Shown: positions 2,735 through 29,700, counted from the first letter of the stretch. The stretch: 36,627 nt of DNA from Octopus bimaculoides (GCF_001194135.2 NC_069003.1:27391792-27428418), one strand, 5' to 3'. The notes: generated from the sequence alone by a model not told the origin. Translations and numbers: made by a program.

Positions 2735-2971
2735 GTCAGAGCTACCTTCTTATTGATCCGTTATATACTGTCCAATGTTGTGGTCATATCTCAAGTTGGG
2801 AAATCTTCACTAAACGTGCTGGAACAGTCCGTATGCAAATATGGCGCCCCCAAAACAACAACAACAACAGCAGCAGCAACTACACTGATGTGGTGGACAA
2901 CAATAATTCAAAGGGCCAACAAAGCAATACCTATCAGTTAAGGGGTCAAAATAACCTTCTTGTTTCTCCAG
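2735..2971 (+). CDS. Exon 1 (first visible; phase 1-1): N-terminal non-cadherin module, part 1
   Basis: ttttcag acceptor and G|gtagga donor. Encodes [49 protein letters not shown]...[13 protein letters not shown]. Confidence 0.8.
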
Positions 2972-4158
2972 GTAGGAGAAAACACTGTCTTATCATTATT
3001 GTTATCGTTATTATTGCCGAGTCTGTTGTTGATATTATTGATCTTATCATCATCATCATCATCATCCTCATCGTCATCATCAGCATCCTCCTCATCATCA
3101 TCATCGTCATCATCAGCATAGTTATTTAAAGAAATTAATGGAAAATTAAACCTCAAATTCAGCCAATTTCTCCAGCCTGATGCCAGTCACAACAAAGATA
3201 TTTAAAAGCATAAACATTTAAAACAAACCTAAAAACTGCTGTCGATGTTATTTCCTTTAACCTGGTAACATTGATATTTGTGTCTGTGACAGCCAGATCT
3301 GTGTTTCTTATCATTGATATTATCTTAGCATTCTTGATAAGTTCTCTCATTAGTCCAAATGGAGATCTTCCCTTGATTTAACTGTTTTTTGTAATTATTT
3401 CCAATTTTAGATTAATAGTTCAAGGGTTCTATTTTTAGAAATCTTTATTCTTAATTCTCACTCATATTCACTTTCATTCATATTTTTGGTTGTGTTATTC
3501 TGGTAATTATTGTCATTATTTAATATATTTACTTATTTTCTACAGATAATATACAGAAAAAACTGGTTTTTCCTGTTACCCCGGCACAGTCTATTATGGT
3601 AAACACAGGAGATATGATTGGATGGTATGGTCTCTACAAGTTTCACATAACAAATTTCACTATAAGACTTTGGGTGTATGTATGTATGTGTGTATGTATG
3701 TATATATGTATGTATGTATGTATGAATGTATGTATGTATGTGTATAAATAGAGGGTGCATAAGATATTTGAAGACAGATTTATGTTTATAAAAAAATAGA
3801 TACCTAATAACAGATAATAACCTCTAGCTGTTTTGCAATGTCAGAAGCCTTCGAACAGGGTTCGTTTTCCACAATTCTCTTCAAACAGCAAAACTTCCTT
3901 TCCAGAGGCCCAAGTCGACCAGAACAAGAATCTGTTGATTCTTTTCCTTGGCTTTTGAATTGCATATTAACAGTAGCAAGAAGAATTTGAAGATTTTCGG
4001 TAATTTTTCGCTAGCCAAGACCAGCCTCAGATTGCCCAACAATAAAACCTCTTTGAAAATCTGACAGTTGTACTGAATCTTTTGTGCGTGGCATGGTTAC
4101 TCTTTGCAAATGTTTAATATAATGGCACCTGGAATAAAAAAGAATAATTACTGTATAC

Positions 4159-4469: not shown

Positions 4470-5699
4470 GATAGGTAGATAGATATAAATATGCAAGAAT
4501 AATAATTTGCTTTATTAGGTCTTATTCAGGACGTGATATGATCACATACAATAAGAATGCTGCAACCAGAAGTACCATCTTGAGAACTTCGAAGATGCCA
4601 TCCCTGAAAATCGGAGACACATTTCAATTTCCTGTCAGAGTTATTGAAGATCGTAACTATGCTGTGAAAGCAGTTCTTTCATCTGGTAGGTATAGCAATA
4701 ACAGCAACAATAATAATGATGATGATGACTGATGATGATGGTTGATGGTGATTGATGATGATTGATGGTGATTGATGGTGATTGATGATGATTGATGGTG
4801 ATTGATGATGATTGATGGTGATTGATGATGATTGATGGTGATTGATGACAATGATTGATGGTGATTGATTGTGATTGATGATTGACGGTGATTGATGATT
4901 GATGGTGATTGATGATGGTGGTGATTGATGATTGATGGTTGATGGTTGTTGATGCTGATGATTGATGACGATGATGATTGTTGGTTGATGATTATGATGA
5001 TGATGATTGAGCTTACCAACCACATAGTTCCTGGTTCAGTCCCACTGCATGGCACTTTGGGCAAGTGTCTTCTACTGTAGCCTCGGGGTGACCAGAGCCT
5101 TGTGAGTGGACTGGGTAGACAGAAACTGAAAGCCCATCATATATATGTGTATACATACATACATATAGTGGATGTACTTAGTTGACTTTAGACGTTTCCA
5201 CTAATTAAATTGTGAAATAAAACATAACACTTTCTATCTTTGCCCACAGGTAAAGCACCAGTTTTTCGGAATCTACCTGCCGTGATATCTGTTCCAAGAA
5301 ATACTACTAAAGGGACATTGGTGTTTAGTATAAAAGCACATGATGATGACAGACAGGGCAAAATCTTCTTCCAGTTTATAGAATTTTCCAAGGAGAATAT
5401 TTCATTCCATCTGAATTCTGAAAGTGGTATATATTTATTCAAAGTTTTTCTGTTGTACGCACATACACATGCTTGCATGCGTGTGCAACACACACACACA
5501 CACATACACACACACACACACATACACACACACACACACACTTATATACGTATATACATACAAATACACATATATAGTCACATACATATATACACTGATA
5601 GATATGCATACACATATATATATATATATGTACATATGTGTACCTGAGTGTATGTGTGTGACTATGTGTATGACTATGTGTGCATGTATGTGTATGTGT

Positions 5700-5733
<34 letters not shown>

Positions 5734-5743
5734 NNNNNNNNNN

Positions 5744-5788
<45 letters not shown>

Positions 5789-7461
5789 GAGTGAGTGGAC
5801 AAATGAAAGAAGGGCACTCAACACATTAATTGGTAGTTGAAATTCAAAATGGCTGACGACTAGCATCATACTTGAAACTCAGAGTACCAACAAATTTGAA
5901 TAAAACTGTTTTGATCCATACATATATACAGGGTTGGCCTTCTGGAGTCAATTTAATTGATCTCTCTGCATCACAGATACAAATCAATATTGAGTTTTGT
6001 TTTCTTTTTTATATTTTAGGTGGGATATATTTGAATTCCAGTATTCCAGATATTGATTCCTTTAAACTGAAACTCCGAGTTTCTGATACTTGTGGCATGT
6101 ATTCTGACAGCATTTTAGACATTAGATTTAAACAAAAGAAACTGGGCAGTATATCGCCATTACAAGAGGTAAGTACATGTACTTGAGAGAGAGGTGAGGA
6201 GGAGAGTCTAAAAACAAGGAAGAAAGCAAAAGGGTGGGAAAAGTAAGGAATGAGAGAGCGGGGGAAGAAACAGAAAGAGAGGAACGTGTTGTGATAGTTG
6301 TAGACATCATAATAATTTTATAAACTTTTGAGAGAACATGAAACAATTTTGGGGTGGGATAGTAGGTCTCAAAATGCATAAAGCTATAAGTAATCTTTTT
6401 TGCTATAGGCACAAAGCCTGAAATTTTGGGAGAGGGAATAAATTGATTACATTGAACCAGTATGCAACTGGTACTTATTTTAGCAACTCCAAAAGGATGA
6501 AAGGCAAAGTCAACCTCAGTGGAATTTGAACTCAGAATGTAAAGACAGATGAAATGCCACGAAGCATTTTGCTGGATGTGCTTCTGATTCTGCCAGCTCA
6601 CTGCCTTAGCATAAATTTGTGAATAATGGTTTCAAATTCTGGCACAAGCCAGCACTTTTGGGGGAGGGGTAAGTCAATTACATCGACCCCAGTATACAAC
6701 TAGTACTTGTTTTATTGACCAAAAAAAAAATGAAAGGCAAAATCGATCTTGACAGAATTTGAACTCAGAACATGGACATATCAATTACTGAGAAGCATTT
6801 TCCCCGGCATGCTAACGATTCTGCCAGCTTGCTGCCTTAGAATAATGCTACAAATAATCTTTTCTACTATAGGCACAAAGTCTGAAATTTTGGGGGAGGA
6901 GGCTAGTCAATTACTTCAACCCCTGTATGCATTTGGTACTTATTTCATCGATCCCAAAAGGATGAAAGCAAGATTGATCTCAGCAAANNNNNNNNNNNNN
7001 NNNNNNNNNNNNNNNNNNNNNNNNNNNNNNNNNNNNNNNNNNNNNNNNNNNNNNNNNNNNNNNNNNNNNNNNNNNNNNNNNNNNNNNNNNNNNNNNNNNN
7101 NNNNNNNNNNNNNNNNNNNNNNNNNNNNNNNNNNNNNNNNNNNNNNNNNNNNNNNNNNNNNNNNNNNNNNNNNNNNNNNNNNNNNNNNNNNNNNNNNNNN
7201 NNNNNNNNNNNNNNNNNNNNATCTTTGCATGACTATTTGCAGCACTTCCAGTTTTACAATTTACCATTCCATATTGATGTGAGAGAGGACGCAAGCCAGC
7301 AGATGCTTCTGCGACAGTTCAACGTCAGTCATTCGGTGGCCGAAAGGAAAATATCCTGTTCTTTAATCAATGGAACTACGCAGAAGAATTTATTCCTTCT
7401 GAAACAAACCTTTCCATTCATAAGTGAGTAGAATTGTCCTACTTACGTACATATACATAAT

Positions 7462-7493
<32 letters not shown>

Positions 7494-10400
7494 TAATTAT
7501 AATGGTGTTTTTTTATAAACTTAAAGCTTATAGTGATCGCCGTGCAAATTGACTATGGAAAATAGTCTACTAATGGGGCATATAAGCCCTCAACAAAAAA
7601 GCAGGCTTTTCCATACATGTGGGACTTGAACCCACATCCCTTTTCCTTAGTCATTTGCACAGTGATTGCTATAAGCTTTAAGCTTATAAAAACAAATACC
7701 ATTATTATTATTTACAGAATTGTAAATCTCGACATCGCTTAACAAAACCATTCGCACCATGTGTATATGTGTGTGTGTGTTTAATAGTACTGTTTACCTT
7801 CAATCACTCCCAGTTTCTTTTTATTTACCATTGAAAAACAAAATATTGTTGAAACCAGTTTGGTATTTCAATAAATTTGTTACAAAATTTAAAAACTTCA
7901 TGTTTTAAGACTTAGGTGCATTTACAACCCCTGAAACTAACTCTCCTATATATATATATATATGTATAGGTTATGAGTGACAGTGATGTCAATTAGACCC
8001 AGAGGTTTCAAGTAATGCTGAGTAAGTGCTATGGATAGACCACGGTTAAGTTCCAGGTTCAGTGGTTATGCGAATAAGGAGTCGAACTTAGGTCATATAT
8101 CAGCGTGTGAATATAGGATATACTTTTCGTAATGAGATAAAAAAACCCAAGGCTGTGTATAATATAGAACATTTATAACATTTATATATATATATATGTA
8201 TGTGTGTATATTTCAGACACATATGAACTTTATTTGCGAGCCAAAGCCAAGTTATTGTATACAAAATTCACTTCACATGTAGCAGTTATAACCTGTTTTG
8301 ATGGTCACCAAAAGATTCAGTCGTCCCTTACAATGGATCTGATCAAGAACAAAGCTCCAGTTGTACATAATTTACCTGGTAAGTACCAAAACCATTCTCT
8401 AGAGTTTCAATATCATTTCGGATGATTTATTTTTTGGTCTTGCAATGTCTAATGTTTCTGGAACGGTGTTGTAAACGATGAGCGACTTAATTGATCATTG
8501 AAGCGAAAAAGAAATAAAAAGGAAAAAAGAAAATGGATGAATTTGCAAATATATTGTGGAATTATTAGACAGACAAATGAACGGACAATGGAAGAAGTAA
8601 TTCTTCAAATAAATGGAAAATCGAGTTTCTCAAGAATTATTCTATGCTGACGCCCACAATATATGTATGGATGCTTGTGTATGTGTGTTTGTGTGTGTAC
8701 ATACATGTATGTGGGTGTGGGTGTGTGCACATACATGCATATGTGTGTGCATAAGTATGTATGTATTATGTATATATGTATAATTATATATACATATATA
8801 CATATTCGCCATGATTGACTGCTAACTCCACAAGTTTTTTTTTTATTCCCTCTCTGTTTATTTCTTCATGTTCCTTTCTGTTGAAGGATGAAGACAGACA
8901 GACAGACACACACATTATATATTATATCTTATTTTATATTAGATTATATGTATATATATATATCTAGAGAGAGGGTGAGAGAGAAAAGGAGGGACAAAGA
9001 AAGCAGAGTAAGGGTAAAAGAGGAAATTCTGTAATAAGAGTGTGTGCATATTTAGCCCAAAAAGGCTGAGAAGCCATGCAACCTTGAGAAAAGCGAATTT
9101 GATTTTCGAAATCTGTATCCTAAGAATAATGTTGTCCATAAAATAATAATTATAAAATAAAATTTACTATGACAAATATATCGACTTTTATTTCAACAAC
9201 TCTCCTACCCTCTATCTACCATCATGAATCTGTCTCTATTATTTATCACACTCTTTATCACCTGCTCTCTATGTAGAGGGTCTTGCTGACAAATTTAGAC
9301 AATTTTTATGATGTATAAAACTGGTTATAAATATTAAAATAATGGTAGTAGACAGATAAAATTTTAATGTAACATTTATTACAACAAAAACATTTATCAC
9401 TCAGTATGGTTGCCCTTTTAGGCGATTACTGCTGCTACATGAGAACGAAATTTTTATGCAACGGCCACAACCGCTGCCTTTTTGATTTTGTGTGTTGCAT
9501 GCACAATGCAGGTCTTCATACTGTTGACACTCTAGTGTGGTGAAGCATTGGTCCTTGCTTGAAGTACACTCCATAAAAAGTAATCAAGGAGGTTGGGATC
9601 TGGGTTATTACTGGGCTAGATGTTGGCCCTCACAAAACATGGCACCTTCTCACCAAGGAAGGCCTGTGTTGCTTTTGAACCCTGGCATGGTGCAGAATCC
9701 ACATTGTTGTCAAGCCGAAACTTCTGCTCCATCTAAGGTCACAGAGAGTTCTTCAGGCTGTCCAGATACTCCTTTGTACCAAATTCAATGAAGTATGGAT
9801 CCATGGCACTTCCATCACTTGCCATGGCTCCAAATACCATCACAGAGGCAGGATTCTTAGTCTCAAACACAGGAGGGATATCAGAAGGGTTGTATGCAAT
9901 CATTCAAGAATTTCTGTGATTTACCTCAGTGTCCACAATGATCTTTTTCTCGTCCACAAACACGAGAGTTTTTCCTGCACCTCAATACTTGATGAATAAC
10001 AGAAGCTTGGGCATCTCTCAGCTCTGATTGCTTTGGCCTTGGCTGTTAGGAGGTGACGGCTTTGTCGAACATAGCTGGTCATGCCAAGGTTCCTGTTCAC
10101 AGCTCTGGGCACTATGGAAAGAGACACATTGCGTTTCTTTGTAAGAATTATGAATATCCAACTAATTTTGTTTTTGTTTGTCAAAGCTACTTACAAATTT
10201 TCCTTTAATCACTCAATTTCTTCCTCTGTTTCCATCACAATGAACATCTCTTCAATATGTTACATGAAAATTGTGTGTTTGTGTTATGGTAAATTCGTAT
10301 TTCTTTCTTGCTATGAATCTGATATTATATGTGTTTAACATTCATGTATTTGGCAACCAATTCACCATTCATAAAACTTTACCAAAAAATTTTCCACTCG

Positions 10401-13400
10401 TTGGCTATGCATAGATTTCTATTTTTATCTGTAGCCAATTCTAGGTAAACTAGTTTAGCATCAGAGACGAGACTTTGCTTTATTTAGAGAATTGGGATTT
10501 GGAAAGAATTTCTTGTCGAATGCATTCTTTGATTCCCAAATTCTTTATTTTATTTATTCATTTATTCCATTTTTTTACATTTCTGTAGAATTTGTCTTTC
10601 TTTTGCTTTATTTGTTGTTTTTGGTTTCAATCACATTTCGGATTTAGATCTCTTTTTTCCATTTCCTTTCTCTCAATATCGGTTTAACCCTACAACTGCG
10701 AAATTAAATTTCTTAGTTATTCCAGTAATGATGTTATATATCTACCAAGAAATAGAAATGGTATTTTCTGCAAGTCCTGTTGCCACCATAAACTTAAAAT
10801 ATCTTTTATCTTTTACTTGTTCCTGTCACTAGACCATGGCTATACTGAGGCACCACCTTGAAGAATTCTTAGTTGAATGAAGTGGCCCCAGTCACTAGCG
10901 TAGCTAGTAGGGTGCAGTAAGGTCGGTCCGCCCCAGGCAGCACTTTTAAAGGGGCACCACTTTTGAGTCTGCTGTAGGTAATATGTGTCTTTTGTGGGGT
11001 CTGGGGATGGCAAACATAAAGGCCATCCCGGGTGGCACACATTCTAACTATGCTAGTGGCACCAATACTTATTTTTTTCTTTTTAAGCCTTGTACTTATT
11101 TTATCAGCCTCTTTACTGAGCCACTAAGTTACAAGGATACAAACAAACCAACACACACTCACACACACATTAATAGAAGACGGGTTACTTTCATTTTCTA
11201 TCTGCCAAATCCACTCACAAGAATTTGGTTGGCCCCTGGCTATAGTAGAAGACACTTGCCCAAGGTGCCATGCTGTGGGTCTGAACCAGGAACCATGTGA
11301 TTAGGAAGCAAGGAAGCAAGCTACTTACCACACACCCATGCCTGTGCCTACATCTTAACAAAAATTAATGTCAAACATGACATTACTCAACAAGAGATAA
11401 TATATCTTTTCCAGCATCAATATCCATTTCTGCGAAAGATACCAAAATAGGAAGTCAAATATATTTTGTGAATGCAACTGACGAGGAGGGAGATTCTTTA
11501 ATAATTTCAATGTCCTGTCCAAAGAAACACTGCCCTTTCCAGATGTCAACATGTAAGTAAAATATTTGGGTAACTCATAATTTCTAAAAGAATGCAACTG
11601 GAATTAACCCTTTAGCATTTAAGCTAGCCCAAATATTCTATCTGTTTATGTTTAAAACTGGCCAGATCTGGCCTCTCACACCTACCCTATAATATCATTC
11701 TAAAAGTAAATTATCACATCATCAAAATCTTGGAGATATGAGATAGTGCATGATTAATTCAAAGCCTTTAACAGGATAATCTTAATGCTAAAGGGTTAAA
11801 CTGGCCAAATATCTGGCCCAAATAACATTCTACCTGTTTTATGCTTAAACTGACCAGATCTGGCCACTCACACTTATGCTATACTATTATTCTAAAAATA
11901 AACATTCACATAATTTAAATCTCAAAGTTGAGAGGTAATACATAATGAATTCAAAACAATGCAAATAAGTAAGCAATACATTTGACAGAATAATATGTAC
12001 GCTACAAGGTTAACGTGTCATTCATTACAGGCTGAAGTCTGATTTCTGGAATTGAATAAATGTGGGTTTTTTTTGCATTTTGTGAGTTTTGTCTGTCATA
12101 TTAAGAAGAGGGATTTGGTATTTGGAGGCAATTTCAAGAGCGTAGGGAATCATATATGTATCTGTGTGTGTGTGTGTGTGTATTTATATATATATATATA
12201 TATATACAATTATGTGTATTTCTTCTATCTTAATGAATAAAAATTCTTCGGATAGAATAAATGGGTTAATAGAAACCAATGTAGCAAAGAACACAAAATA
12301 ACTGTGGTTTAGTTCCTGTTTTTAAGGCAGGAACTCCTTGAAATTTTGGGTATTTGAGTATATTTAAAAAATTAAGGAATGGAGAAAACGCATGTTATNN
12401 NNNNNNNNNNNNNNNNNNNNNNNNNNNNNNNNNNNNNNNNNNNNNNNNNNNNNNNNNNNNNNNNNNNNNNNNNNNNNNNNNNNNNNNNNNNNNNNNNNNN
12501 NNNNNNNNNNNNNNNNNNNNNNNNNNNNNNNNNNNNNNNNNNNNNNNNNNNNNNNNNNNNNNNNNNNNNNNNNNNNNNNNNNNNNNNNNNNNNNNNNNNN
12601 NNNNNNNNNNNNNNNNNNNNNNNNNNNNNNNNNNNNNNNNNNNNNNNNNNNNNNNNNNNNNNNNNNNNNNNNNNNNNNNNNNNNNNNNNNNNNNNNNNNN
12701 NNNNNNNNNNNNNNNNNNNNNNNNNNNNNNNNNNNNNNNNNNNNNNNNNNNNNNNNNNNNNNNNNNNNNNNNNNNNNNNNNNNNNNNNNNNNNNNNNNNN
12801 NNNNNNNNNNNNNNNNNNNNNNNNNNNATACATTTTTTTTCACAAAAATAAAAATAAACTTTAGGGGTGCATAAATTACATGAGTAGATCATTTGCAGAA
12901 TTTTTTTGAAATTTTTTTTGCTGAAAAAAGAGGTACAAAACATAAACATTTGTACCAGAAGCTGACTCATTTAATGTCAGAATAGGTTTTTACAGAAAAA
13001 ATAAGGGCTTAAATATAATGAAGTTGACTTTTATTTATGCTGGATGGTATAATGCTAATATTTTCTGTAAAAATTTACTAAAACCATTAAACGGTCAACT
13101 ACTTTCTGAAGTCTGGTGGTCATGCTTCTCATCACGGTCCAGGCCATATTTTACGTATTTTACTCGATTGAATAAAGTGTCATCCAAGCTGATGTTTATT
13201 GGTAATTAAACTTAATTTGTAACACCTGCACATATTTATCAGCCTTATGAATATATATATGATTCTTTACACTTATGAATAACTTTATAGCTGGGACAAT
13301 GTCATCAGTTCGTGCCCTACTAGCAGAAACTTCACCAATATTTGATCTTAAGATGTTCATATCAGATCATTATAACCAAGAAGGACCATTCATTTTAACC

Positions 13401-13992
13401 GTACTTCTTACAGGTAAGAATACATTCCATTACACCTTATTATGAACCTATATAACCCTTTAGTATTTAGACTTGCCATATTCAGCCCTAAATCTTATAT
13501 CTGCTTTATTTTCAAACTGGCTACAACTGGCCTCTCACTCCTACCCTACAGTGTCATTTCAAAAATACATTCTCACATTATTGAAACCTTGAAGCTACAA
13601 GATAATGCAGGATTAATTGAAAATGATGTAAATAAATGAATATTACATTTGAAAAAATAATCTGAATGCTAAAGGGTTAAACTTATTTTGTTGTGTATCA
13701 TTCATAAAAATAATTGATAAAGCAGCATGGCAAATGATTTTATTTTGCTCCAGGACTCAGTCATTGGATTGTGGCCATGCTGGTGCACCCATCATCAGGT
13801 TTTTAAATTGGATTATATTGTAATGTAATCTATGGAAAACGTTTCCAAACATAATATCTCTGGATCTATATCATCCAGCATACCATTTCTTCTTAAGACT
13901 GGTCCTCAACTATCTTTTACTTATGGACCTCTTTGACTCCTATTTTATCCAAGTGGACCCTCATAGCCATTCAATGCTTAAAAAATCCTTTT

Positions 13993-14039
<47 letters not shown>

Positions 14040-14688
14040 TTAACGTCCGCTTTCCATGCTAGCATGGGTTGGACGATTTAACTGAGGACTGGCGAACCAG
14101 ATGGCTGCACCAGGCTCCAATCTGATTTGGCAGAGTTTCTACAGCTGGATGCTCTTCCTAATGCCAACCACTCTGAGAGTGTAGAGGGTGCTTTTACATG
14201 CCACCGGCACAAGGGCCAGTCAGGTGGTACTGGCAACGGCCACGCTCAAGTGATGTTTTTTACATGCCACCTGCACAGGAGCCAGTCCAGTGACATTGGC
14301 AACGACCTCGCTCAAATGTTTTTTCACGTGCCACCGGTTGAGAACCACTGCTATAGAGTTTTCACCATGAACCCTGTTTTATATTTACCATTTATCATTA
14401 TGACTTTTCTTGTGTCCTTAGACCTGAACAATCCACCAACAATATCACCAAATGAAGCTAATCTATATGTGAAAGAGAACACAGCTAATACGGAAATGAT
14501 CTTCCAACTCCAAGGTTCAGATTTTGATGATGACCAGTTAACCTATCACTGGAGATTTCAGTCTGAGTCAGGATCCATGTATTTTAGCTTAAGTAAATGT
14601 AAGTAGAAACCAATGAATAATGCAGCGGAGATAGTTTTCATTCAAGCTTCTGCTGCAAACTCTGCTTAAGTGTAAAATTATTATTATG

Positions 14689-15134: not shown

Positions 15135-16550
15135 NNNNNNNNNNNNNNNNNNNNNNNNNNNNNNNNNNNNNNNNNNNNNNNNNNNNTAGAAAACCTTCAT
15201 TAATTGCATGGCCATATTTATCTTAAATTTCTGAAATAAAAAAGGAAAATACAAAACTCAAATACAAAAGGGCGTTACTTCTGCCACACCCTACACACAC
15301 ACAATTCTATCTGAATAATGCTAAATCGCTGAGTGATAGATTTACTTTAATTTATAAGAGAACATTAAACACAACTCCAAAGTGTGTTGCATCGTGTGTG
15401 TGTGTGTGTGTGTGTGTGTGTATTTATTTTTGTATTAAAATTATAAATATATTTCCTTTCCCTCTTTTATTTGTAGCTGGAGAAATAACAGTGATTTCTA
15501 AGCTGGATTTCGAGAGTATGTCATCTCGTAATTTCAATGCTACAGCTTGGGCCAATGATGGTATATCAGAATCGAACCCAGTAAAGCTTTGTATCAAAGT
15601 GGTCGACATTAACGAACCACCCCAGTTCTCCTCAGCTAACTATTCACTTTCTGTATATGAGAATTCGGTAAGATTATTTTGGCTGGTCCTTCTTCTAAAG
15701 TTTTTGTTTTTAAATTAGGTCCAAATTGTTGAGATTGAAAAATAAAAGTGGACATCATTTGATAGGGTGTTCATGTCCTGACGTATCACAAGTTTATGTC
15801 TTATAACAAGAATACTGCATTAGTATTTTGGGTTTTAATATAATATCCACATTAAGGTGGCAAACTGGCAGAATCATTTGCATGCCGTGTGAAATGCTTA
15901 ACGGAATTTCATCTGCCGTTACATTCTGAGTTCAAATTCCACCAAGGTTGACTTTGCCTTTCATCCTTTCTGGGTCGATTAAATAAGTACCAGTTACGCA
16001 CTGGGGGTCGATGTAAGCAACTTAATCCCTTTGTCTGTCCTTGTTTGTCCCCTCTGTCTATAAGAAATGTATAATAGTATAAATAACTGTGGGGTCACTC
16101 ACCAAGCAGATAGTGTAGATGTGGGGGGTCAAGTCGTTTGACCTTTGACAGACACAAGAAGAAAGTCTAAAGGACATACAGATTTTGCATCTAGGCAGGA
16201 AGGCAGAAAGGGCATTGTGAGAGGGGTTATAAATCACTACAGTGCAAAGGGTTTGCATTCACATATACATCCGTGTATACATACATATTTACACAGACAC
16301 AATGATGGAGTTGGTGGAAGTGATGGGGTTGCTATTCATTTTTATGAATTAACGTTCCTACATATTTCACTTTGTGGATGTGCATGGCTTAGTGGTTAGA
16401 GTTCTGGGCTCATGGTTGTAATATAGTTTCGATCCCTGGACTGGGCGATGCATTGTGTTCTTGAGCAAAACACTTCATTTCACATTGCTCCAGTTTACTC
16501 AGATGGTAAAAATGAGTAATCCTGTGATGAACTGGCATGCCATCCAGGAG

Positions 16551-16591
<41 letters not shown>

Positions 16592-17853
16592 AAACTGGGA
16601 AATTGGCCCTGTGCATCTTATGGAATAATGTGAACTAACCATTTTTCTCTTTACTTCTCTATTTCAGGCTGGAGTTGTTGTAATCCCAAATACAATGTTT
16701 CAAGTCTATGATCCAGATCAGTTAGACAAAATAACTTTCAAAATTTCGGGAGGACAACATGCTTTAAACTTCAAAATTGACCCTGATTCTGGAGAGGTCA
16801 GATTCGCTGTGAACTATGATGTCCGAATCATGCCATCACATGTCTTATTGAACATCACTGCTATAGACAAGTCTGGTTTAAACTGCACTGCTCAAGTGGA
16901 CCTAAACATCAAACCTTTGAACTGGAAACCTTATCTTAACAATTTACCATGGAAACAGACAGTTCCTGAGAACAGTAACTTCAGTGGACGTCCACTCTAT
17001 ATTGTCACTTCTTTCGATGCTGACAAAATGGACCCGGTTTATTTCCGGGCATCGTTTTACCCTTTGACTGGTGCAAGTAAATTCTATCTGAATTATTCCA
17101 GTAAGAGTTATTCTTAATATTATCATAAAACTTTTCATTTGTGGTTGTTGTTGCTGTTGTTGTTTGGCCTTGTAGGGGTATCCTGATCGAGCAGGCCTAT
17201 GATCTTAAAGCATTCTAGAAATGATCATTCTGTTATATTTTCATACTATATCCACTGTGCCCTCCATACACATACACACCGTTAATTAAGACAAGAGTAT
17301 GACCTGTGTGAGATTTGGCTGGAGATCGAGTGACCCTGAGGCCTTCATTCATTTAACAGGCTTCATTGTATGCATAACATTATATATTCCACTTCCAGTT
17401 AGTTTTTCTTGTCTATCTCAGTTTTACTTCAAATATGACACAAATACTAGTTGAACACTAAGAGTCAATGTAATTCACTTAACTACTCTTGGCTATGAGT
17501 ATAAAATCTGCATTTCTCTCCTAAGCCATGTCATGCCAGTGTGGTGTAGGTTCATCAAACCAATATGATCTCAAGTTCAAATTCATGGCTTTCACATCAG
17601 ACCATGGTTGGTGGAGAGGACATGCTGAGGCCTTTATCTTGTAGCGGACTGAACATTGACAATCCAATTCAAAATTGAAATTCTAATAGATGCTTTTCTC
17701 TATCAACAGCTACTGACTGATGTGGGTGGTTTATTCCATGTTTCAACATGTTACCAAAAGTCATGGGTGCTGTTTTGATTTTTGATTTAGTAAGCATGTC
17801 CGTGAGTGCTTGACACATGGAATTCAAGGAAAGATGTCCAAGGTGATGGTGAC

Positions 17854-17885
<32 letters not shown>

Positions 17886-17909
17886 CACCGACAATGCTGA
17901 TGACAATGA

Positions 17910-17940
<31 letters not shown>

Positions 17941-18623
17941 AGTGATGATTAACGATAAACAATATCAATAAAACTGTAATGAAACAATAAATTATGGAGA
18001 TGTACTTGCATAGCAAGTGATCTGATCTGAGATCGTGTGCTGGAACGAAAACAATTGTAGCGTGGAAGGTGTTTATAAGCCATTTAAAATAACACACAAA
18101 AGCCGTCAGATTCACTTCAACATTTAAATTTAATTTGTCAAAATATTTTCGTCGCTTTGAGACCGTGACAATTTTGTCAGTGAACAGGTCGTGGTCTCAA
18201 AGCGACGAAAATATTTTGACAAATTAAATTTAAATGTTGAAGTGAATCTGACGGCTTGTGTGTGTTATTTTAAATGGCTTATAAACACCTTCCATGCTGA
18301 AACAATAAATGCTAATGATAAACAATAATAATGTTCAATAAGTTTATAAAAATCCATATTTACATTATTTTTCTTCTTATTTTCTCTTATTATCGTATTT
18401 ATTGTTGCTACAGCTGGGGCTGTATCACTTATAACAGGAGAAAAATTGGATTTTGAAACCGAGCCTCGAGAATACATGTTGGAAGTTATTGTGAACGATG
18501 GTTCTGTTGACTCAAGAGCAGCTAATCTATCAATTACTGTAATCGATGTCAACGAAGCTCCTGTATTTAAACATGATGTTTACTATGCAGAAACAACTGA
18601 ACCAAAGGTATGTAGACATCGTT

Positions 18624-18675
<52 letters not shown>

Positions 18676-20461
18676 CCACCACCACCACCACCATGCTGCA
18701 TCTGGGAATTTTGTCAGCGAACAGGTCATGTTCTCAAAGTGACGAAAATATTTTGACAAATTAAATTTAAATGTTGAAGTGAATCTAACGGTTTTTGTGT
18801 GTTTTTAAATGGCTTATAAACACTTTCCACGCTGCAATTGTATATACATATGTATATATATATATATCTTCTATAATTTTTTTGTCTTCTACTTGTGTCA
18901 GTCATTAGACTGTGACCATTTTTAAAAACATATCCATTAGATTTTTATTCTTATTTTTATGCTATAGTTTACTGCACATATAAACGTGCACACACATTGA
19001 TATGTCTGTCTTTTTTCCTCTTTCGACTCTCTTACTAAAATTACTACTGTTATTTTCTCCCTTTTACAACTTGTTTGTAAATATCCTATTTTTTCCCTAT
19101 TACTCCATTTGTATTCTCCCTTATTGTCTCTTATTTTACTTTACTTTATTTTATTAAACCTTTTTCGATGTCCTTACAAAAATTCCTCACACTGATGAAA
19201 ATGTCAATGCGTAAATTTAATTATAATTACTATGACTATAATTTTTTTCTTACATATTTGTATTGTCCTTTGAAACGTGCATATGTATTGAATCCTATTT
19301 TGTATTAAATCTAATTTTTGATTCAACATCTTTTTCTCCTCCATTTTTTCTATAATTGTTTATGGTATATTTATACCTATAACGATATTNNNNNNNNNNN
19401 NNNNNNNNNNNNNNNNNNNNNNNNNNNNNNNNNNNNNNNNNNNNNNNNNNNNNNNNNNNNNNNNNNNNNNNNNNNNNNNNNNNNNNNNNNNNNNNNNNNN
19501 NNNNNNNNNNNNNNNNNNNNNNNNNNNNNNNNNNNNNNNNNNNNNNNNNNNNNNNNNNNNNNNNNNNNNNNNNNNNNNNNNNNNNNNNNNNNNNNNNNNN
19601 NNNNNNNNNNNNNNNNNNNNNNNNNNNNNNNNNNNNNNNNNNNNNNNNNNNNNNNNNNNNNNNNNNNNNNNNNNNNNNNNNNNNNNNNNNNNNNNNNNNN
19701 NNNNNNNNNNNNNNNNNNNNNNNNNNNNNNNNNNNNNNNNNNNNNNNNNNNNNNNNNNNNNNNNNNNNNNNNNNNNNNNNNNNNNNNNNNNNNNNNNNNN
19801 NNNNNNNNNNNATATATATGTATATATAAATCTGACTTCCACAGTAAAAGGGTTAAAATAAGTCTTATATTTTTTCTTTCTTTTACTTTTTCCTCAGAAA
19901 GGTTTGGTATTAATGAAATCAGCTGCATTTGAAGTGAGCGATCCAGATTTGAATGACGAGTACAACTTTACGGTGGAGCCAGGAAATTACAGCAGTTTCT
20001 TCAAATTCGATCCTCTCACCAATAATCTCATCACAACTCTCGACTACAATTCCCATATAGTACCACATCACGTGATGCTTATCATCTCAGTCAGTGACCG
20101 TGGTGGTTTGTCGGACAGTGCAAGGGTTGACGTATCAATCAGATCATTGAATAAAGCTCCAGTGATTACAGGACTTCCCTTGTCATTGATGGTATCAGAG
20201 AGCACACCTAACAATACTGAGATATATAGAATCAATGCTGTGGATCCAGACTCCGAAGATACAGTGTTTTACCAAATTGATTATTTGACTGTTGGGGCTT
20301 CGTCCAAGTTCTTCTTTAATCAGTCGAGTAAGTAATTCTTTGACTCAGTCTTATCTCACTACTTCTTTCTTATCTTTGGCATTTTCGTTGTCTTGTCCCT
20401 TCTTTCATGCTTTGTGAATGGATTTGGTAAACAGAAACTGAAAGAAGCCCTTCATATACAT

Positions 20462-20505
<44 letters not shown>

Positions 20506-21364
20506 GTATGTATATATATGTATGTATGTATATATGTATGTATGTATTTCTATGTGTGTGTCCCCTTCTGTCTGTGTTTGTCCCTCCACCACTGCTTGGC
20601 AACCAGTGTTAGTGTGTTTGTGTTCCTGTAACTTAGTGGTTCAGCAAAAGAGCTTAGAAAAATATGTACAGGAGTCGATCCATTCAGCTAAAACTTCTAG
20701 GCGGTGCCCCAGCATGGCCATAGTCTAATGACTGAAACAAGTAAAAGATAAAAGATAAATAAAATAAAATGACCCTATTTGTTTATTTTGTGTTTTTTTT
20801 TTTTCCTTTTCTTTTTGTTAAGCTGGAGCAGTCCATGTGTCTGGAAATCTAGATTATGAAATGATGACAACAAAGGAGTTTACAGTTAGCGCGACAGCAA
20901 GTGATGGCCATTTAAATTCTCCGTCATATAACCTCACCATTGTCATCACAGACTCCAATGAACCACCATATTTTACATCACAGATTTTCTACGTAAAAAC
21001 TTTCGAAGCAAAGGTATTTATCTCTTCTCATTTGTCTTTGATGCTCCTGCTGTAGGTCCACCCAGTTGGCATCTCATATATGAGAATTCTCTTTAGTATT
21101 CCAGTAGATTAGGTATGCATGTGTGTGTGTGTGAGTGTGTATGTGTGTGTGCATGAGTGTATGTGTGTGTGAGTGTGTGTGTGTGTGAATGTGTATGAGT
21201 GTGTGTGTGTGTGACATATTTTCAATTTCTATTAGCAAGTCTTTATATTTACTGATCTTGTCAAATTCTTTCGCCGTTATATTGTCATCCCAAGGAATAC
21301 TCATGCCAATTAATAAACACATCTTTTTTGTCTGGTCTTTTATGATAATATCCAGTTTATTAGC

Positions 21365-21426
<62 letters not shown>

Positions 21427-24400
21427 AAGGTGGTGAGATGGTTGAATCATTAGTGCATCAGACAAAATACTAAATGGCATTTCTTCTGGTTTTACATTCT
21501 GAGTTCAAATCCTGCACGGGTTGGCTTTGAATTTCATCTCTTTTGGGGGTGGGATAGGTGGGGGGTGTCAATGCAATAAATACAATATGAGCCCCGGGGT
21601 TAATATAATTGTCTAGATACCCCTCACCCAAAACTTCAGGTGTTGTGCTTATAGTAGAAAAAAATTATTGTTGTTGTAACTGTTTTTTTGCCCCAGGTCA
21701 CGTTCTATTTCTGTCTTTTAGGAAAGAACAGTGTTTACAAACATCATTCCTCTGAATACAATAGAACCTGATCAAGGAGATGTCACTCAGTACAAAATTA
21801 GCAAAGGTTCAAATCACAGTCTGTTTGCAATTAATAGCACAACAGGTGAACTGTACTTTGCCGTCAACTACAGTACTACCACAATGCCAAAGTTTACCTC
21901 AATCAATGTCACAGCATACGATTCGTCAGGATTGAGCAGCACAGCCAGGCTCGATATTGACATCAAGGCTAAGAACCGGATTCCAAAGATAATCAACTTA
22001 CCACAGACTGTCTATGTTAAAGAAGAAGCAAAACCAGGCACAGAACTGTTTCAGGTAGATGTCTATGATGCCGACAAGGATTCTGTGTCATTCAACTTCA
22101 TCTATTTCCCACCTCAAGGAGCTGTGTGGTTTACATTCGATGATAAAAGTAAGTAGGTTCTTTTAATTGTGTTATAATTATTGGTGAAAGCACATGGCTC
22201 AGTGGTTAGAGCGTCAGGCTCACAATCATGAGGTAGTGAGTTCAATTCCTGGACTAGGCTGTGTTATGTTCTTGAGCAAGACACTTTATTTCACGTTGCT
22301 CCAGTTCACTTAGCTGTTGTGATGTCACTGATGCCAAGCTGTATTGGCCATTGCCTTTCCTGTCAAGCTAGCATGGAAAATGGACATTAAATGAAATGAT
22401 GATATACTTACATATAGGTATATAATGTATGTATAGAGTGTTTACTCTTCATATTACAGGTGGAAAACTATTTACAGCAGCTGACCAAATGCTTAACTAC
22501 GAAGCTATGTCTGATGTTAGCTTTATATTTTCTGTATCTGTGAGTGATGGCAAATCCCATTCAGATTTCTCCAACCTTACCTTGCAAATTGTTGATGTAA
22601 ACGAAGCTCCACACTTCTATTCTCGCCTTTATTTTGTTGATGTTGTTGAAAGCAAGGTGAGTAGAACATCTCCTTGCATGCCACCATCTCTTTTCAATGT
22701 AGTTAGGATGAGTTCAACAGTTGTGTTCGAAATTAAATAAAACTCAATGGATTAATATCTTTTATCTGTTATCTTCTGCTTGTTTCAATCATTTGACTGT
22801 GGCCACCGACCGAAAACCCCTCGAAATCACTGTTCCTTTACATTCCAAATTACAAACAGTCAAATCAATTCAAATCACATCAAATCAAACAATCAAAATA
22901 GCATAATTTAATAATCAATGAATAGGCACTTAAGCCTCTTATACTTCCTCCCCGAGCAACTCTTTTGCTGCCTGCAGGCAAGCCTGCTGCGACAAGCAAA
23001 CTTCTTACCACTCAGCCCTACCTGAAGTTACGTATGCTTGTTTAAGAACATTAAATGATTATTTTGTGTTTGAAATGTTGATGACAAGTGATTCTGATAA
23101 ATCAAGCCTGTGCATTTCATATTGTATATTTAACAGGGTGGAACTGTGTTGCCGATGTATGTCCAATTTAAAGTAATTGATCCTGATATCAATGACACTT
23201 ACCACTTCAGTATGATGAGTTCAGATAACAGCAGCTGGTTTTCCATAGATCCAATCACTGGAAATATTAGTTTTGCTATTGATTATAATGTCAGGTAATG
23301 CAATGTTCAATAACTATTATAGTGTTCTATATTTCTCTGCATGGACTAGAATTTGTGTGTGTGAGTATATACATATATATGTGTACATGTGCATGTATAT
23401 ATGTATGGTCATATGTATATATGTAGTGAAAATGTGTGGCTTAGTTGTTAGGGTGTTCAGCTCACAGTCGTATGGTCATAAGTTCAATTCCAAGTGATGT
23501 GGCGAGTCCTTGAGCAAGACACTTTATTTCATGTTGCTCCTGTCCAATCAGCTGGCAAAAATGACTTGCACTTGTATTTCACGAGGGCCAGTCTGGCAGT
23601 ACTGGCAATGGCCATGCTGAAATGGTGTTTTTTACGTACCACCTGCACAGGAGTCAGTCCAGTGGCACTGGCAACAACCTCGCTCGACTGTTTTGTTCAC
23701 ATGCCATTGGCACAAGTTCCAGTAAGGCGACGCTGGTAACGGTCATGCTTAAAAGGTACTTTTTATGTGCCACTGGCACGGAAACCAGACAGCTGCTCTG
23801 GCAGTGATCCCACTCAGATGGAGCTGTTAGCACTCCACTTGCATGAGTGCCAGTCATGGAATTTGGTTCAATTTCGATATATATATATTAAAGATTAATA
23901 GATAAGATGGAGTATAAAAAAATTATTTATTAGAAAAACAGTTGTTCCAGTTCATGTTGCAAAACTCCCTTTCGAGACAGTACTTCTTGATACACCAAAC
24001 ATTTCGGTTGTTTTCGTTATGTTAGCGCCTGCCATACGAGCACCAACAATTTGTCCTCTTTGAAAGTCAGACAGATCTGTCATTTTAATGAATTCTAATT
24101 ACCTTTTTCTCATTATGCCTGAAAAGAAACAGCAATTTTAGTAAAACATATTAAGCAACACTATCAATAAATCAAAAAACATAAAAATAAACAAGCTTTT
24201 GACGGTTTTATAGATATTTCAAAATTATGATGCTATGATGCTAAGTGTTTCCATTATTTTGTCCAACCCCTGCATATATACATGTGTGTGTATGATTTTT
24301 TTTAATTATAGACTCCACCCTTCAAATATATTTCTGGTTGTTGCTGTGAAAGACAGGCATAATCTGCAGGACACCACTTTGGTCAATGTTACAGTACATT

Positions 24401-26351: not shown

Positions 26352-26388
<37 letters not shown>

Positions 26389-26628
26389 ATGTGTATGTTT
26401 GTACATATGTGTGTATTTATATGGGTGTGTGTGTGTGTGTGTATGTCCATGTCTGTGTTTGTTCCTGCTAGAAAATCAGTGTTGTCTCTATAACTTGACA
26501 TTTTTCAAGAGACCAATATAATAAGTACCAGATTAAAAAAAGTAATTACTGGAGTTGATTTGTTTGACTAAACCCTGCAAGGCAGTGCCCCACCATGACT
26601 GTAGTCCAATGACTGAAACAAAAAGAAA

Positions 26629-26675
<47 letters not shown>

Positions 26676-26688
26676 TATNNNNNNNNNN

Positions 26689-26733
<45 letters not shown>

Positions 26734-29700
26734 TCTTTTATTTGCTTTAGTCTATCTATCTATCTATCTATCTATCTATCAATCAGTCTGACTGACTGTC
26801 TGTCTGTCTCTCTCTCTCTCTCTCTTTTTCTCTCTCATTCTCTTTCTCTTTCTCTCTCTCATTCTCTTTCTCTTTCTCTCTCTCTCTATACACACACACA
26901 CTCGCTGGGCTTCTACACAGTCTCAGTCTGCTAAATTTACTCACAAGGTGTTGGCAGGCCTGAGGCTATAACAAAAGATATTTCTTCCAAGGTACTGCGG
27001 TACTGCACAGCAGGACTGAACCCAAGACCACACAGCTGCAAAGCGAGCATTCTAACCACACAACAGCCATGCCTGCACTTTCTATACCTCTACCTTATTT
27101 TTCCTTCCATAATCTCTCTCCTCACTTCACCATTCCTCTCAAAATACTTTTGTCTATTTCCAGCCAGGGACTGTTCTTCAAGAAAGCCACGTGGTACAAG
27201 CCTTTGATCAAGACGCTGACGATGCCATCGTCTACAGCATAGGTTCAAAGGACGGCAACGCCACAATGTTCAGCATCAATCGAACCTCAGGTCTTCTCAG
27301 TTTCGCTGTCAACTACGACTGTACCATGATGCCCCACTACGTCACCTTATGGGTTCTGGCCAAAGACACTAAAGGCTTGGTGGGTCGAGCTGAGGTTAGG
27401 ATCTTGGTAAGTCACTTGAACCGGATCCCAATGGTGAAGAATCTTCCGGCTTCGATAACAGTCCCAGAGAATATCGGTCCACGTCTGCTCTATACTTTAC
27501 TTCTTCACGATCCGGACCCAAACGATCCAGCTTTCTTCGTAGCCACTTTTACCCCGGCTTTCGGAATGGAAACCTTTCATGTTGATACTGGAAGTAAGTA
27601 ACAAACCACTTAGAGGCTGGTATGTAAATCATTGAAGATGATGATGATGATGATGGTTGTCCTGGTGGTGGTGGTGGTGGTGGTGGTGGTTGTGGTGTTG
27701 TTGTTGTTGTTGTTGTTGGTGGTGGTGGTGNNNNNNNNNNNNNNNNNNNNNNNNNNNNNNNNNNNNNNNNNNNNNNNNNNNNNNNNNNNNNNNNNNNNNN
27801 NNNNNNNNNNNNNNNNNNNNNNNNNNNNNNNNNNNNNNNNNNNNNNNNNNNNNNNNNNNNNNNNNNNNNNNNNNNNNNNNNNNNNNNNNNNNNNNNNNNN
27901 NNNNNNNNNNNNNNNNNNNNNNNNNNNNNNNNNNNNNNNNNNNNNNNNNNNNNNNNNNNNNNNNNNNNNNNNNNNNNNNNNNNNNNNNNNNNNNNNNNNN
28001 NNNNNNNNNNNNNNNNNNNNNNNNNGGTGGTGGTGGTGGTGGTTGTGATGGTGATGGTGGTGGTACCCTTTGCGTGACACCAGTATCTGCCACGACTGAC
28101 CACTAAGCCACGTGCCTCCATGCTGTGACCATATGGTGTGTGACTAACCAATACGAGCGGAGCCGTCACTCCAGCTGGATCCTCAGAAGAGAGAACACAA
28201 TATGCAGTCCGAAACTCAGAGAATTGAGCAACATGACCAAACCTCAAAACATTGGAGAAAATTCCATCTGGTATTTCTTCCACATCTTTACATTCTGAGT
28301 TCAAATCTCTCTGAGGTCAACTTTGTCATTCATCCACTCAAAGTTAATAGATAAAACAATGGTCTATGAGATTGACAAACCACTCATCCTCAAAATTTGT
28401 GGCTTTGTGGCTTTGTTAAAAACTGTTATTTATTCCCCCTGTGTCAAAATACTTTTTCTACTTATCCACCAGGTGGTGCTGTCACTTTAAAAGAAGGACA
28501 AAAGTTGAATTATGAGTTCTGTGACATGTATGTGATAACGATCACTGTATATGATGGCCACAATCATTCAGTTCCTGAAAACTTTACCATTATCATAGAA
28601 AATATCAACGAGGCCCCATATTTCCTGATGTCACGTTATTACATTACGGCTCCAGAAGGCTCTGTAAGTATAAACAGATTTTCTGTGTTAAGTTTTGTAT
28701 AATGAAAGTAAACAAACATAGTTTGTCTTTAGAAGCATTGAGATGTATTGTAAGATACAGAAATAAATTCATTTCTCAAACACGCGATAATGCTATAAAT
28801 AGCGTGAACAGGATAAATTATCCATATAATGCAGAAAAATACGTTGCCGGCCAGCCATGAGACTCGAACTCACATCTCTGTGATTACATGTCAAGTGTTT
28901 TACCATTAAACTAAACTGCCCAGCAACGAATTCTTCTGCAATTTTAGAACTTATAAATTTAGCTGTATTTTAATATTATGCATTTTGTCAGGCAGCAAAC
29001 TAGCAAAATTTTTAGCATGTTGGACAAAATGCCTCGTGGCATTTAAAGTACCTTTATGATAACTGTAAACCTACTTTTTGGCCACCCTATATATTATAAC
29101 ATTGATATTGTATAGCTCTCTTACCTTATATATTATCTTATATAACAATATCTTATAGCCTTGCTATGTAATATATCATAAAATTAGTATGACATACCCA
29201 GCTATTTAATATCCTTTAACATTGGTATATTCTTTCCTGTTTTCATTTTTACTATTATTTTCTTTCTGCCAAGAGGCTGCGACATTACTACCAGATCCTT
29301 CACTGGAGGTTCAAGACCCAGACAGGAATGATTCTGTGACTTTTTCATTGGTGGGTAACAAACACAGTCAGAGATTTGCCATCCACCCCAATACGGGTAT
29401 CTTAAGCTATGCTGTTGATTATGACATTGACAGAAATGCTATGCCCAGCACTGAGACTATCAAAATATATGTGACAGACAAAGGTGGCTTACAAGCTACA
29501 ACTGAAATTCAAGTCCACATCACTGATGTTAATGACAATGCACCAATTTTCAACCAATCAAGTTACACGATTTTTGTACAGATCACAGATCCAGTTGGCT
29601 CCAGATACCTTACAGTTCATGCAACAGATTTTGATCAAAAACGCAATGCAGAAATACAGTACGCTATGGACGATTTTAAAAACTTAAAATATTTGGGGAT

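Follow-up and report, generated by a model that had tools for sequence, protein, structure and literature searches.

Complete and partial calcium-binding linker motifs alternate along duplicated two-repeat cassettes in an octopus cadherin and its molluscan relatives

What does it mean for a long cadherin if every second linker of its ectodomain lacks the acidic residues that normally bind Ca2+? This question is raised by a locus of Octopus bimaculoides, NC_069003.1:27391792-27428418 (assembly GCF_001194135.2), a stretch of 36,627 nt which we refer to as the window. A single multi-exon gene on the + strand spans ~2.7 kb to 35.3 kb of the window and encodes an ectodomain of 16 extracellular cadherin (EC) repeats, as counted with a family-specific EC hidden Markov model (HMM). 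An earlier note on this DNA had described a strict alternation of canonical and basic, acid-depleted linkers, and had derived from it a zig-zag ectodomain with five hinges. The reading that we favor, and consider likely, is that the central ectodomain consists of five two-EC cassettes in which full three-Ca2+ joints alternate with partial joints that would hold at most one Ca2+.

The alternation itself is borne out in full. All twelve linker strings listed in the earlier note occur once each, in the order given there and on the + strand, and the strings at the DxE position (LDFE/VNYD/LDFE/LDYN/LDYE/VNYS/LNYE/IDYN/LDYE/VNYD/LNYE) are all present in step with them. Between EC4 and EC15, the linker types come in the order A B A B A B A B A B A, after which stands a classical DVNDNAP; here the A-type is D/N-x-N-E-x-P after L-D/N-F/Y-E and the B-type is x-x-N-(W/K/R/N/R)-x-P after a degenerate V/L/I-N/D-Y-x. 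Ca2+ motifs are complete at the EC4-5, EC6-7, EC8-9, EC10-11, EC12-13, EC14-15, and EC15-16 junctions and partial at the five B-junctions, a strict alternation that represents 1 of the 462 orderings of five B-type linkers among 11. The linkers of EC1-2, EC2-3, and EC3-4 are also non-canonical, and the unusual region therefore starts upstream of position 15477; the span of 15477-29600 that was originally delimited does contain the alternating motifs, but it misses the non-canonical linkers already encoded by the exons at 5250-14598.

The gene model was assembled from open frames and splice signals, guided by the Octopus sinensis protein, and comprises 26 exons with GT...AG at every intron, an unbroken frame, and 2036 residues without the signal peptide. 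From model residue 110 onward, it is identical at 1927/1927 residues to RefSeq XP_014775730.2 of O. bimaculoides, which carries the database name “protocadherin Fat 2 isoform X1.” Over 1907 aligned columns, the orthologue of O. sinensis is 93.6% identical; the alignment has just two single-residue indels, both in the cytoplasmic tail and none in the ectodomain. The Pfam family PF00028 matches with E = 2.3e-86 in 10 stretches, and the tandem ECs place the protein in the cadherin superfamily. The window is AT-rich (36% GC), with numerous microsatellites and ten runs of N, four of which fall inside the alternating region, and one may ask whether the pattern is an artefact of sequence mis-joined at these gaps or of a wrong gene model. 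We regard this as scarcely credible: all four gaps lie in introns, between the GT donor and AG acceptor of consecutive exons, the model matches RefSeq and is colinear with the O. sinensis and Argonauta proteins, and the same pattern is found in three bivalves. Since the gaps are intronic and the O. sinensis alignment is free of ectodomain indels, no exon is concealed in a gap.

To set the pattern against other cadherins, we scanned 122 further proteins with cadherin repeats, each of them having eight or more ECs. The longest alternating run is usually 1 to 3 linkers and reaches 5 to 6 in a few proteins, such as an avian type-III “CADN.” Alternating runs beyond that range were found only in a family of mollusc cadherins (6 to 18) to which the octopus protein belongs and which is defined by a shared N-terminal domain. 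In addition, short alternating runs (ABABAB) were seen in three cadherin-repeat proteins that carry Calx-beta domains and derive from metagenomes or assemblies; a cassette logic like that of the octopus protein may exist in an unrelated lineage.

The partial character of the B-junctions emerges from 20 cassettes of five species, which are 23 to 38% identical to the reference apart from orthologues and are not independent samples. For the assignment of ligand positions to Ca2+ sites 1 to 3, we assume the arrangement of classical cadherin structures. In the B-type linker, an acid is found neither at the D100 equivalent (0/20) nor at the D103 equivalent (0/20), the latter being K or R in 8 cassettes and the residue after it K in 8, and the DxE region of the odd ECs is degenerate. 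The linker Asn and Pro, on the other hand, are present in 20/20, as is the xDx Asp of the next EC, whose DxD motif retains its first Asp in 19/20 and an acidic third position in 17/20. In 17/20 cassettes the odd EC retains its XEX Glu, and an NLP motif has its Leu in 16/20 and its Pro in 19/20. At the A-junctions, the linker Glu is found in 20/20, the first linker position is D in 17 cassettes and N in the other 3, and the even EC has its DxE Glu in 19/20. The loss of D100, D103, and the DxE Glu thus does away with sites 1 and 2, and the retained Asn, DxD, and xDx leave site 3 in place. On this residue pattern, the B-type linker is best read as a partial Ca2+-free linker, which would bind at most one Ca2+, rather than as a Ca2+-free one. 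The partial occupancy that the earlier note had allowed for on account of the downstream DxD thus gains from the conserved xDx and linker Asn, with site 3 intact, while its likening of these linkers to the Ca2+-free ones of Drosophila N-cadherin (DN-cadherin) EC2-3 and PCDH15 EC9-10 is not supported as regards full loss of the Ca2+ sites, given that the site-3 ligands are conserved.

The description of these linkers as basic applies in part. K or R is found in 4/5 of the B-type linkers in the window and in 14/20 across the family, but it is the absence of acids at the two ligand positions that is universal, and flanking basic residues are replaced even from one Octopus species to another (K to E, R to I, K to M). 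That none of the 40 variable ligand positions carries an acid is suggestive, in cassettes that are not independent of one another, of selection against acids, as N to D or K to E would take one base change.

The gene structure indicates how the alternation came about. By mean identity, the ECs fall into two subtypes (odd-odd, 31%; even-even, 29%; odd-even, 20%), the odd one comprising EC5, 7, 9, 11, 13, and 15 and the even one EC4, 6, 8, 10, 12, and 14. Each pair of odd and even ECs is encoded by a long exon (L, 427 to 433 nt) and a short exon (S, 191 to 197 nt), with sums of 621 to 627 nt, and every L+S pair is a multiple of three with phase 0 at both ends. Intronic recombination can therefore add or remove cassettes while keeping the frame, and unequal crossing-over within introns would be the route by which they are gained or lost. 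No DNA-level similarity is left among the paralogous exons, and the duplications are therefore old. Exon and repeat structure identify the strict alternation as a direct product of two-EC cassette duplication, not of independent convergence, and it appears to have been retained in every cassette copy since before the cephalopod/bivalve split.

This origin invites the view that the alternation is mechanically meaningless, a neutral relic in which the degenerate linker of one ancestral cassette was simply copied along. Cassette duplication does fully account for the periodicity, and regain of a three-ion site needs several coordinated changes. Nevertheless, the cassettes have diverged to 23 to 38% identity without D or E arising at any of the 40 ligand positions, even though a single base change suffices for N to D, K to E, or Q to E, the Asn and Pro of the B-type linker are invariant, and the A-type sites are intact in all copies. 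Ligand conservation despite this divergence points to constraint on both junction types, and we consider a mere relic rather improbable.

What the joints would look like was approached with AlphaFold2 (AF2) models of EC9-12 (8-row alignment) and EC9-10 (20-row alignment), the geometry being judged from the root mean square deviation (rmsd) and template-modelling (TM) score of Foldseek superpositions. The EC9-12 model has a mean predicted local distance difference test (pLDDT) score of 88.6 and a predicted TM score (pTM) of 0.46, with values of 82 to 92 in the two B-linker blocks and 89 in the A-linker block. Its best match is CELSR1 EC4-7 (7sz8; TM score 0.55, rmsd 8.6 A), followed by protocadherin EC3-6 (about 9 A), whereas the jack-knifed DN-cadherin EC1-4 (3ubh; rmsd 40 A) and LI-cadherin EC1-4 (7cym; TM score 0.27) fit poorly. 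The EC9-10 model (pLDDT 91.3, pTM 0.65; 90 to 95 around the B-type linker) fits straight Ca2+-bound pairs, such as CDH23 EC1-2, CDH23 EC19-21, and PCDH8 EC5-6, with TM scores of 0.69 to 0.70 and an rmsd of about 4.1 A, in contrast to 17.7 A for the bent DN-cadherin EC1-3 (3ubf) and 12.7 A for PCDH15 EC9-10 (5kj4), in what is an ion-free prediction. The ground state predicted by these models is extended, not zig-zag.

The accordion of the earlier note, with sharply bent Ca2+-free B-type linkers forming a collapsible five-hinge spring and perhaps a mechanosensory linker, has to be weighed at this point. Every B-type linker has lost its ligands for sites 1 and 2, and both complete and partial Ca2+-free linkers have been tied to bending in DN-cadherin, Fat/Dachsous, and PCDH15 (PMC8325961). 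However, the conserved site-3 ligands mean that the linkers are not fully Ca2+-free, and the models, with high pLDDT at the linkers (82 to 95), superpose on the bent Ca2+-free structures with deviations of 12.7 to 40 A against about 4 A for straight pairs. We found nothing that bears on a mechanosensory role or links this gene to hair cells, and the features that would mark it as a member of the CDH23 group are lacking. A static zig-zag is at odds with the models, and we hold the accordion as a whole to be decidedly improbable.

An opposite possibility is that the B-junctions are as stiff as canonical ones and less dependent on Ca2+. K or R at the D103/N104 equivalents, together with the conserved N-x-x-P-x-x-x-NLP motif, would then replace sites 1 and 2 through salt bridges to the XEX Glu and through packing. 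The basic residues in 14/20 linkers, the XEX Glu and NLP frequencies given above, and the extended models with a linker pLDDT of 90 to 95 are in line with such joints. Against them, 6/20 B-type linkers are devoid of K/R, the flanking basic residues differ between Octopus species as described, and CELSR1 EC5-6, with a similar Lys substitution, is flexible in molecular dynamics (MD) simulations (PMC12038025). We regard rigid Ca2+-independent joints as unlikely, although if the B-joints did prove as stiff as the A-joints, the family would offer an example of a Ca2+-sparing rigid linker.

CELSR1 (ADGRC1) is the closest known parallel to the octopus protein, being both its best PDB sequence match and the best structural match to the four-EC model. 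In CADH5-6 of CELSR1, the non-canonical K533 and T564 replace acidic ligands, two of the three Ca2+ sites are abolished, and one ion is bound; the 7SZ8 crystal structure is extended, and hinge-like bending in MD is suppressed by a mutant with restored ligands (PMC12038025). The likeness thus lies in the replacement of DxE/DxNDN acids (by Lys and Thr there), the loss of sites 1 and 2, and the single ion left. However, CELSR1 has one such linker in nine ECs, compared to five at two-EC spacing in the octopus and about 13 in the bivalve Solemya, it keeps the first Asp of DxNDN, which mollusc B-type linkers never do, and it is a seven-transmembrane adhesion G protein-coupled receptor with EGF domains and laminin G (LamG) domains. 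In the HMM alignment to CELSR1, the EC pair that matches the cassette is not cleanly resolved.

Under the cassette reading, the odd-to-even junction within each cassette would have lost sites 1 and 2 and kept the site-3 set (Asn, next-EC DxD, and xDx), and the even-to-odd junction would be a normal three-Ca2+ linker of the form D-x-N-E-x-P with L-D/N-Y/F-E. The ectodomain would then be a roughly straight chain in which stiff three-Ca2+ joints alternate with softer joints of at most one Ca2+, and cassette number would set its length. The analogy to CELSR1 EC5-6 makes it probable that the softer joints are able to flex. We infer one Ca2+ per B-junction, a B-joint more compliant than the A-joint, and length tuning by cassette number. 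Several points weigh against this reading. Ca2+ occupancy, structure, and mechanics enter it as predictions; the AF2 models are ion-free, draw on shallow alignments (8 and 20 rows), and possibly default to a common straight geometry; and their geometry is given by superposition values, without inter-domain angles or an A-type control pair. Furthermore, the third DxD position is non-acidic in 3/20 cassettes, and judging by these residues site 3 may be weak in some copies. Finally, the long forms come from only six species, and squid, cuttlefish, and nautilus orthologues are missing from the top homology-search matches, which is not proof of absence.

Within this sampling, the pattern is conserved both in orthologues and in paralogous cassettes, in cephalopods (octopods) as well as bivalves, and the alternation is present in every cassette across the family. 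Lack of conservation in orthologues, which the earlier note had named as a finding that would refute its idea, is thus not what is seen, the pattern extending well past the cephalopods. The family layout consists of a ~160-aa N-terminal domain, EC1-EC3 with non-canonical linkers, EC4, a variable number of cassettes, an EC with a DxNDNxP linker, a last EC, a transmembrane (TM) helix, and a Trp-containing tail, and is common to octopus, Argonauta, Saccostrea, Solemya, and Argopecten as well as about 30 short bivalve clusters. Cassettes number zero in most bivalve paralogues (~900 aa, with six ECs reading BBBAA), one in Argopecten irradians XP_069107014 (1074 aa), three in Saccostrea cucullata XP_062590079 (1514 aa), five in three octopods (1908 to 1927 aa in two Octopus species), and about 13 in Solemya velum KAL5014827 (3565 aa). 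A word-indexed search with an 8-cassette profile recovered only 10 short fragments, and a homology search with the oyster protein returned no close relatives; neither added further long-form members. A family with a duplicating canonical-plus-partial cassette, of two-EC periodicity and with a copy number of 0 to about 13, appears to be undescribed, and in the literature on alternating Ca2+-free linkers, mollusc cadherins, and an octopus statocyst link, we found nothing specific.

The N-terminal domain carries the signature CCGxIxxW...GTVxLQVWR...GDxIGW...RxYAxKA and has no credible Pfam match (weak ones being either noise or matches to the adjoining EC1 stretch) and no PDB sequence match. A profile search with this domain retrieved 310 representative proteins at E <= 1e-3, ~30 of which are cadherins with the same layout. 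The domain is also observed in a Capitella cadherin, in hemichordate proteins (one of them named polycystin-1-like), and in a gastropod apextrin/astacin/CUB protein. At the other end of the octopus protein, the cytoplasmic tail contains an aromatic Trp motif, FEFWNN, and ends in ...NAWLNC, and no known binding motif was recognised in this tail; comparable W..W motifs are seen close to the C-terminus of the bivalve relatives.

Other known cadherins share single aspects of this design. The non-canonical linkers of DN-cadherin EC2-3, PCDH15 EC9-10, and Fat/Dachsous have likewise lost acids and form bending or flexible points in long cadherins, but there they are sporadic, all three sites are without ligands, and the crystals are sharply bent, whereas the octopus family keeps site 3. 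The 7D-cadherins (LI-cadherin, CDH17, and Ksp-cadherin, CDH16) contain a duplicated two-EC unit with a Ca2+-free EC2-3 linker between canonical ones (PMC8427231); they differ in having a single duplication, one Ca2+-free linker, and no non-cadherin N-terminal domain. Partial and complete Ca2+-free linkers as such are already known, and the strict two-EC cassette periodicity appears to be the new aspect.

Databases label members of this family as cadherin-23 or Fat2/Fat4, with which the octopus protein shares a long multi-EC, single-pass build and D-x-N-E-x-P linkers at canonical positions. CDH23 has 27 ECs, starts with EC1 at its N-terminus, and carries a PDZ-binding motif at its C-terminus, and Fat and Fat-like protocadherins have about 32 to 34 ECs followed by EGF and laminin-G domains. 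The octopus protein, in contrast, has 16 ECs and a non-cadherin N-terminal domain, and its identity to cadherin-23, Fat2, and Fat4 is only 23 to 25%. Orthology to CDH23 was rejected on the EC number, the N-terminal domain, the ...NAWLNC terminus, and CDH23 matches that are 24 to 25% identical and rank below Fat-like ones. Membership of the Fat or Fat-like group was rejected on the EC number and a Pfam scan in which, apart from cadherin-type models, there is one weak RibLong match, and neither EGF nor LamG. Nor is the protein an orthologue of PCDH15. The cadherin-23 and Fat2/Fat4 names are automatic labels, not orthology.

Non-canonical cadherin linkers have so far been known as isolated bending or flexing points, and research is active on their role in the mechanics of long cadherins, such as Fat/Dachsous, CELSR, and those of tip links. 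The family described here provides a natural series in which the number of repeats of a canonical-plus-partial linker pair is 0, 1, 3, 5, or about 13 while the rest of the scaffold stays constant, and the share of each joint type in length, stiffness, and Ca2+ dependence is therefore directly measurable. With this analysis, a lophotrochozoan cadherin family is also defined, the N-terminal domain of which is uncharacterised. A further-reaching and quite unlikely proposal is that the two-EC cassette, ~9 nm long with one stiff three-Ca2+ joint and one compliant one-Ca2+ joint, is a mechanical element tunable by copy number, in which the number of cassettes (0 to about 13) would set the reach and compliance of a tether and stiffness would change stepwise with Ca2+. 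In a sensory or adhesive structure of a mollusc, such a tether could serve, for example, as a ruler between membranes or as a link resembling a gating spring. The exons and domains of the octopus gene are listed in Table 1.

Table 1. Exons, domains, linkers, and assembly gaps of the octopus cadherin gene (window positions)
Feature	Position	Strand	Content	Basis or remark
Exon N1	2735-2971	+	~160-aa non-cadherin N-terminal domain (with N2, N3)	Splice sites; Argonauta and Saccostrea alignment
Exon N2	3546-3629	+	N-terminal domain	As N1
Exon N3	4530-4685	+	N-terminal domain	As N1
Exons E1a, E1b, E2a, E2b, E3a, E3b, E4a	5250-14598	+	EC1-EC3 and first half of EC4	AG/GT, in frame, RefSeq-identical
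Non-canonical linkers RFKQKK..., LIKNKAP, TDLNNPP	Within 5250-14598	+		EC HMM table
Exon S0	15477-15667	+	Second half of EC4 (LDFE), first 14 residues of EC5	
Linker DINEPP	15605-15622	+	Canonical, in S0	
Cassette 1	16668-18607	+	EC5-EC6; L1 16668-17100, S1 18414-18607	L+S 627 nt, phase 0-0
B linker KPLNWKP	16911-16931	+	In L1	
A linker DVNEAP	From 18545	+	In S1	
Gap	19390-19811			In intron before cassette 2
Cassette 2	19898-21013	+	EC7-EC8; L2 19898-20327, S2 20823-21013	L+S 621 nt
B linker RSLNKAP	20141-20161	+	In L2	
A linker DSNEPP	20951-20968	+	In S2	
Cassette 3	21722-22656	+	EC9-EC10; L3 21722-22148, S3 22460-22656	AF2-modelled
B linker KAKNRIP	21965-21985	+	In L3	
A linker DVNEAP	From 22594	+	In S3	
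Cassette 4	23137-26140	+	EC11-EC12; L split into L4a 23137-23294 and L4b 24312-24583; S4 25944-26140	
B linker HSINNVP	24397-24417	+	In L4b	
Gap	25613-25747			Intronic
A linker DVNEAP	From 26078	+	In S4	
Gap	26679-26688			Intronic
Cassette 5	27164-28663	+	EC13-EC14; L5 27164-27593, S5 28473-28663	
B linker SHLNRIP	27410-27430	+	In L5	
Gap	27731-28025			Intronic
A linker NINEAP	28601-28618	+	In S5	
Large exon	29276-30105	+	EC15 (VDYDID), EC16, TM helix, start of cytoplasmic tail	Donor AG/GTAA at 30105/30106
Linker DVNDNAP	29525-29545	+	Canonical, EC15	
TM helix	29948-30007	+	20 residues	
Exon C1	32728-32832	+	Cytoplasmic tail	
Exon C2	33769-33827	+	Cytoplasmic tail (FEFWNN)	
Trp motif FEFWNN	33809-33826	+	Cytoplasmic tail	
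Exon C3	35052-35275	+	Cytoplasmic tail (...NAWLNC)	Stop TGA
C-terminal ...NAWLNC	35255-35272	+	Cytoplasmic tail	

The RefSeq models of O. bimaculoides and O. sinensis both begin at an internal Met and omit the exons for the first two-thirds of the N-terminal domain; the two omitted exons (2735-2971 and 3546-3629) are backed by the Argonauta and Saccostrea proteins. No signal-peptide exon was found within the window. A tandem acceptor (AG/AG) is located at 29274-29277, ahead of the last large exon. In RefSeq isoform X3 (1543 aa), splicing to the upstream AG shifts the frame, and a stop follows after 21 residues. This isoform would be a secreted EC1-14 form lacking EC15-16 and the TM helix, and it may be either real or an annotation artefact.

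The introns and flanks contain many dispersed repeats with copies that are 75 to 90% identical, for example 209-559 versus 31190-31572 and 14020-14337 versus 32420-32102, and microsatellites adjoin most of the runs of N. The intron before the last large exon holds a weak tRNA-like Rfam match on the - strand (28849-28920, 36 bits), for which ARAGORN makes no tRNA call and which is probably a tRNA-derived repeat. In cassette 4, an extra intron (23295-24311, GT...AG) that is missing from the four paralogous L exons interrupts the L exon, and this intron contains a dispersed repeat resembling a short interspersed element (23580-23732), with an identity of 88% to 32232-32080 and of 85% to 14208-14333.

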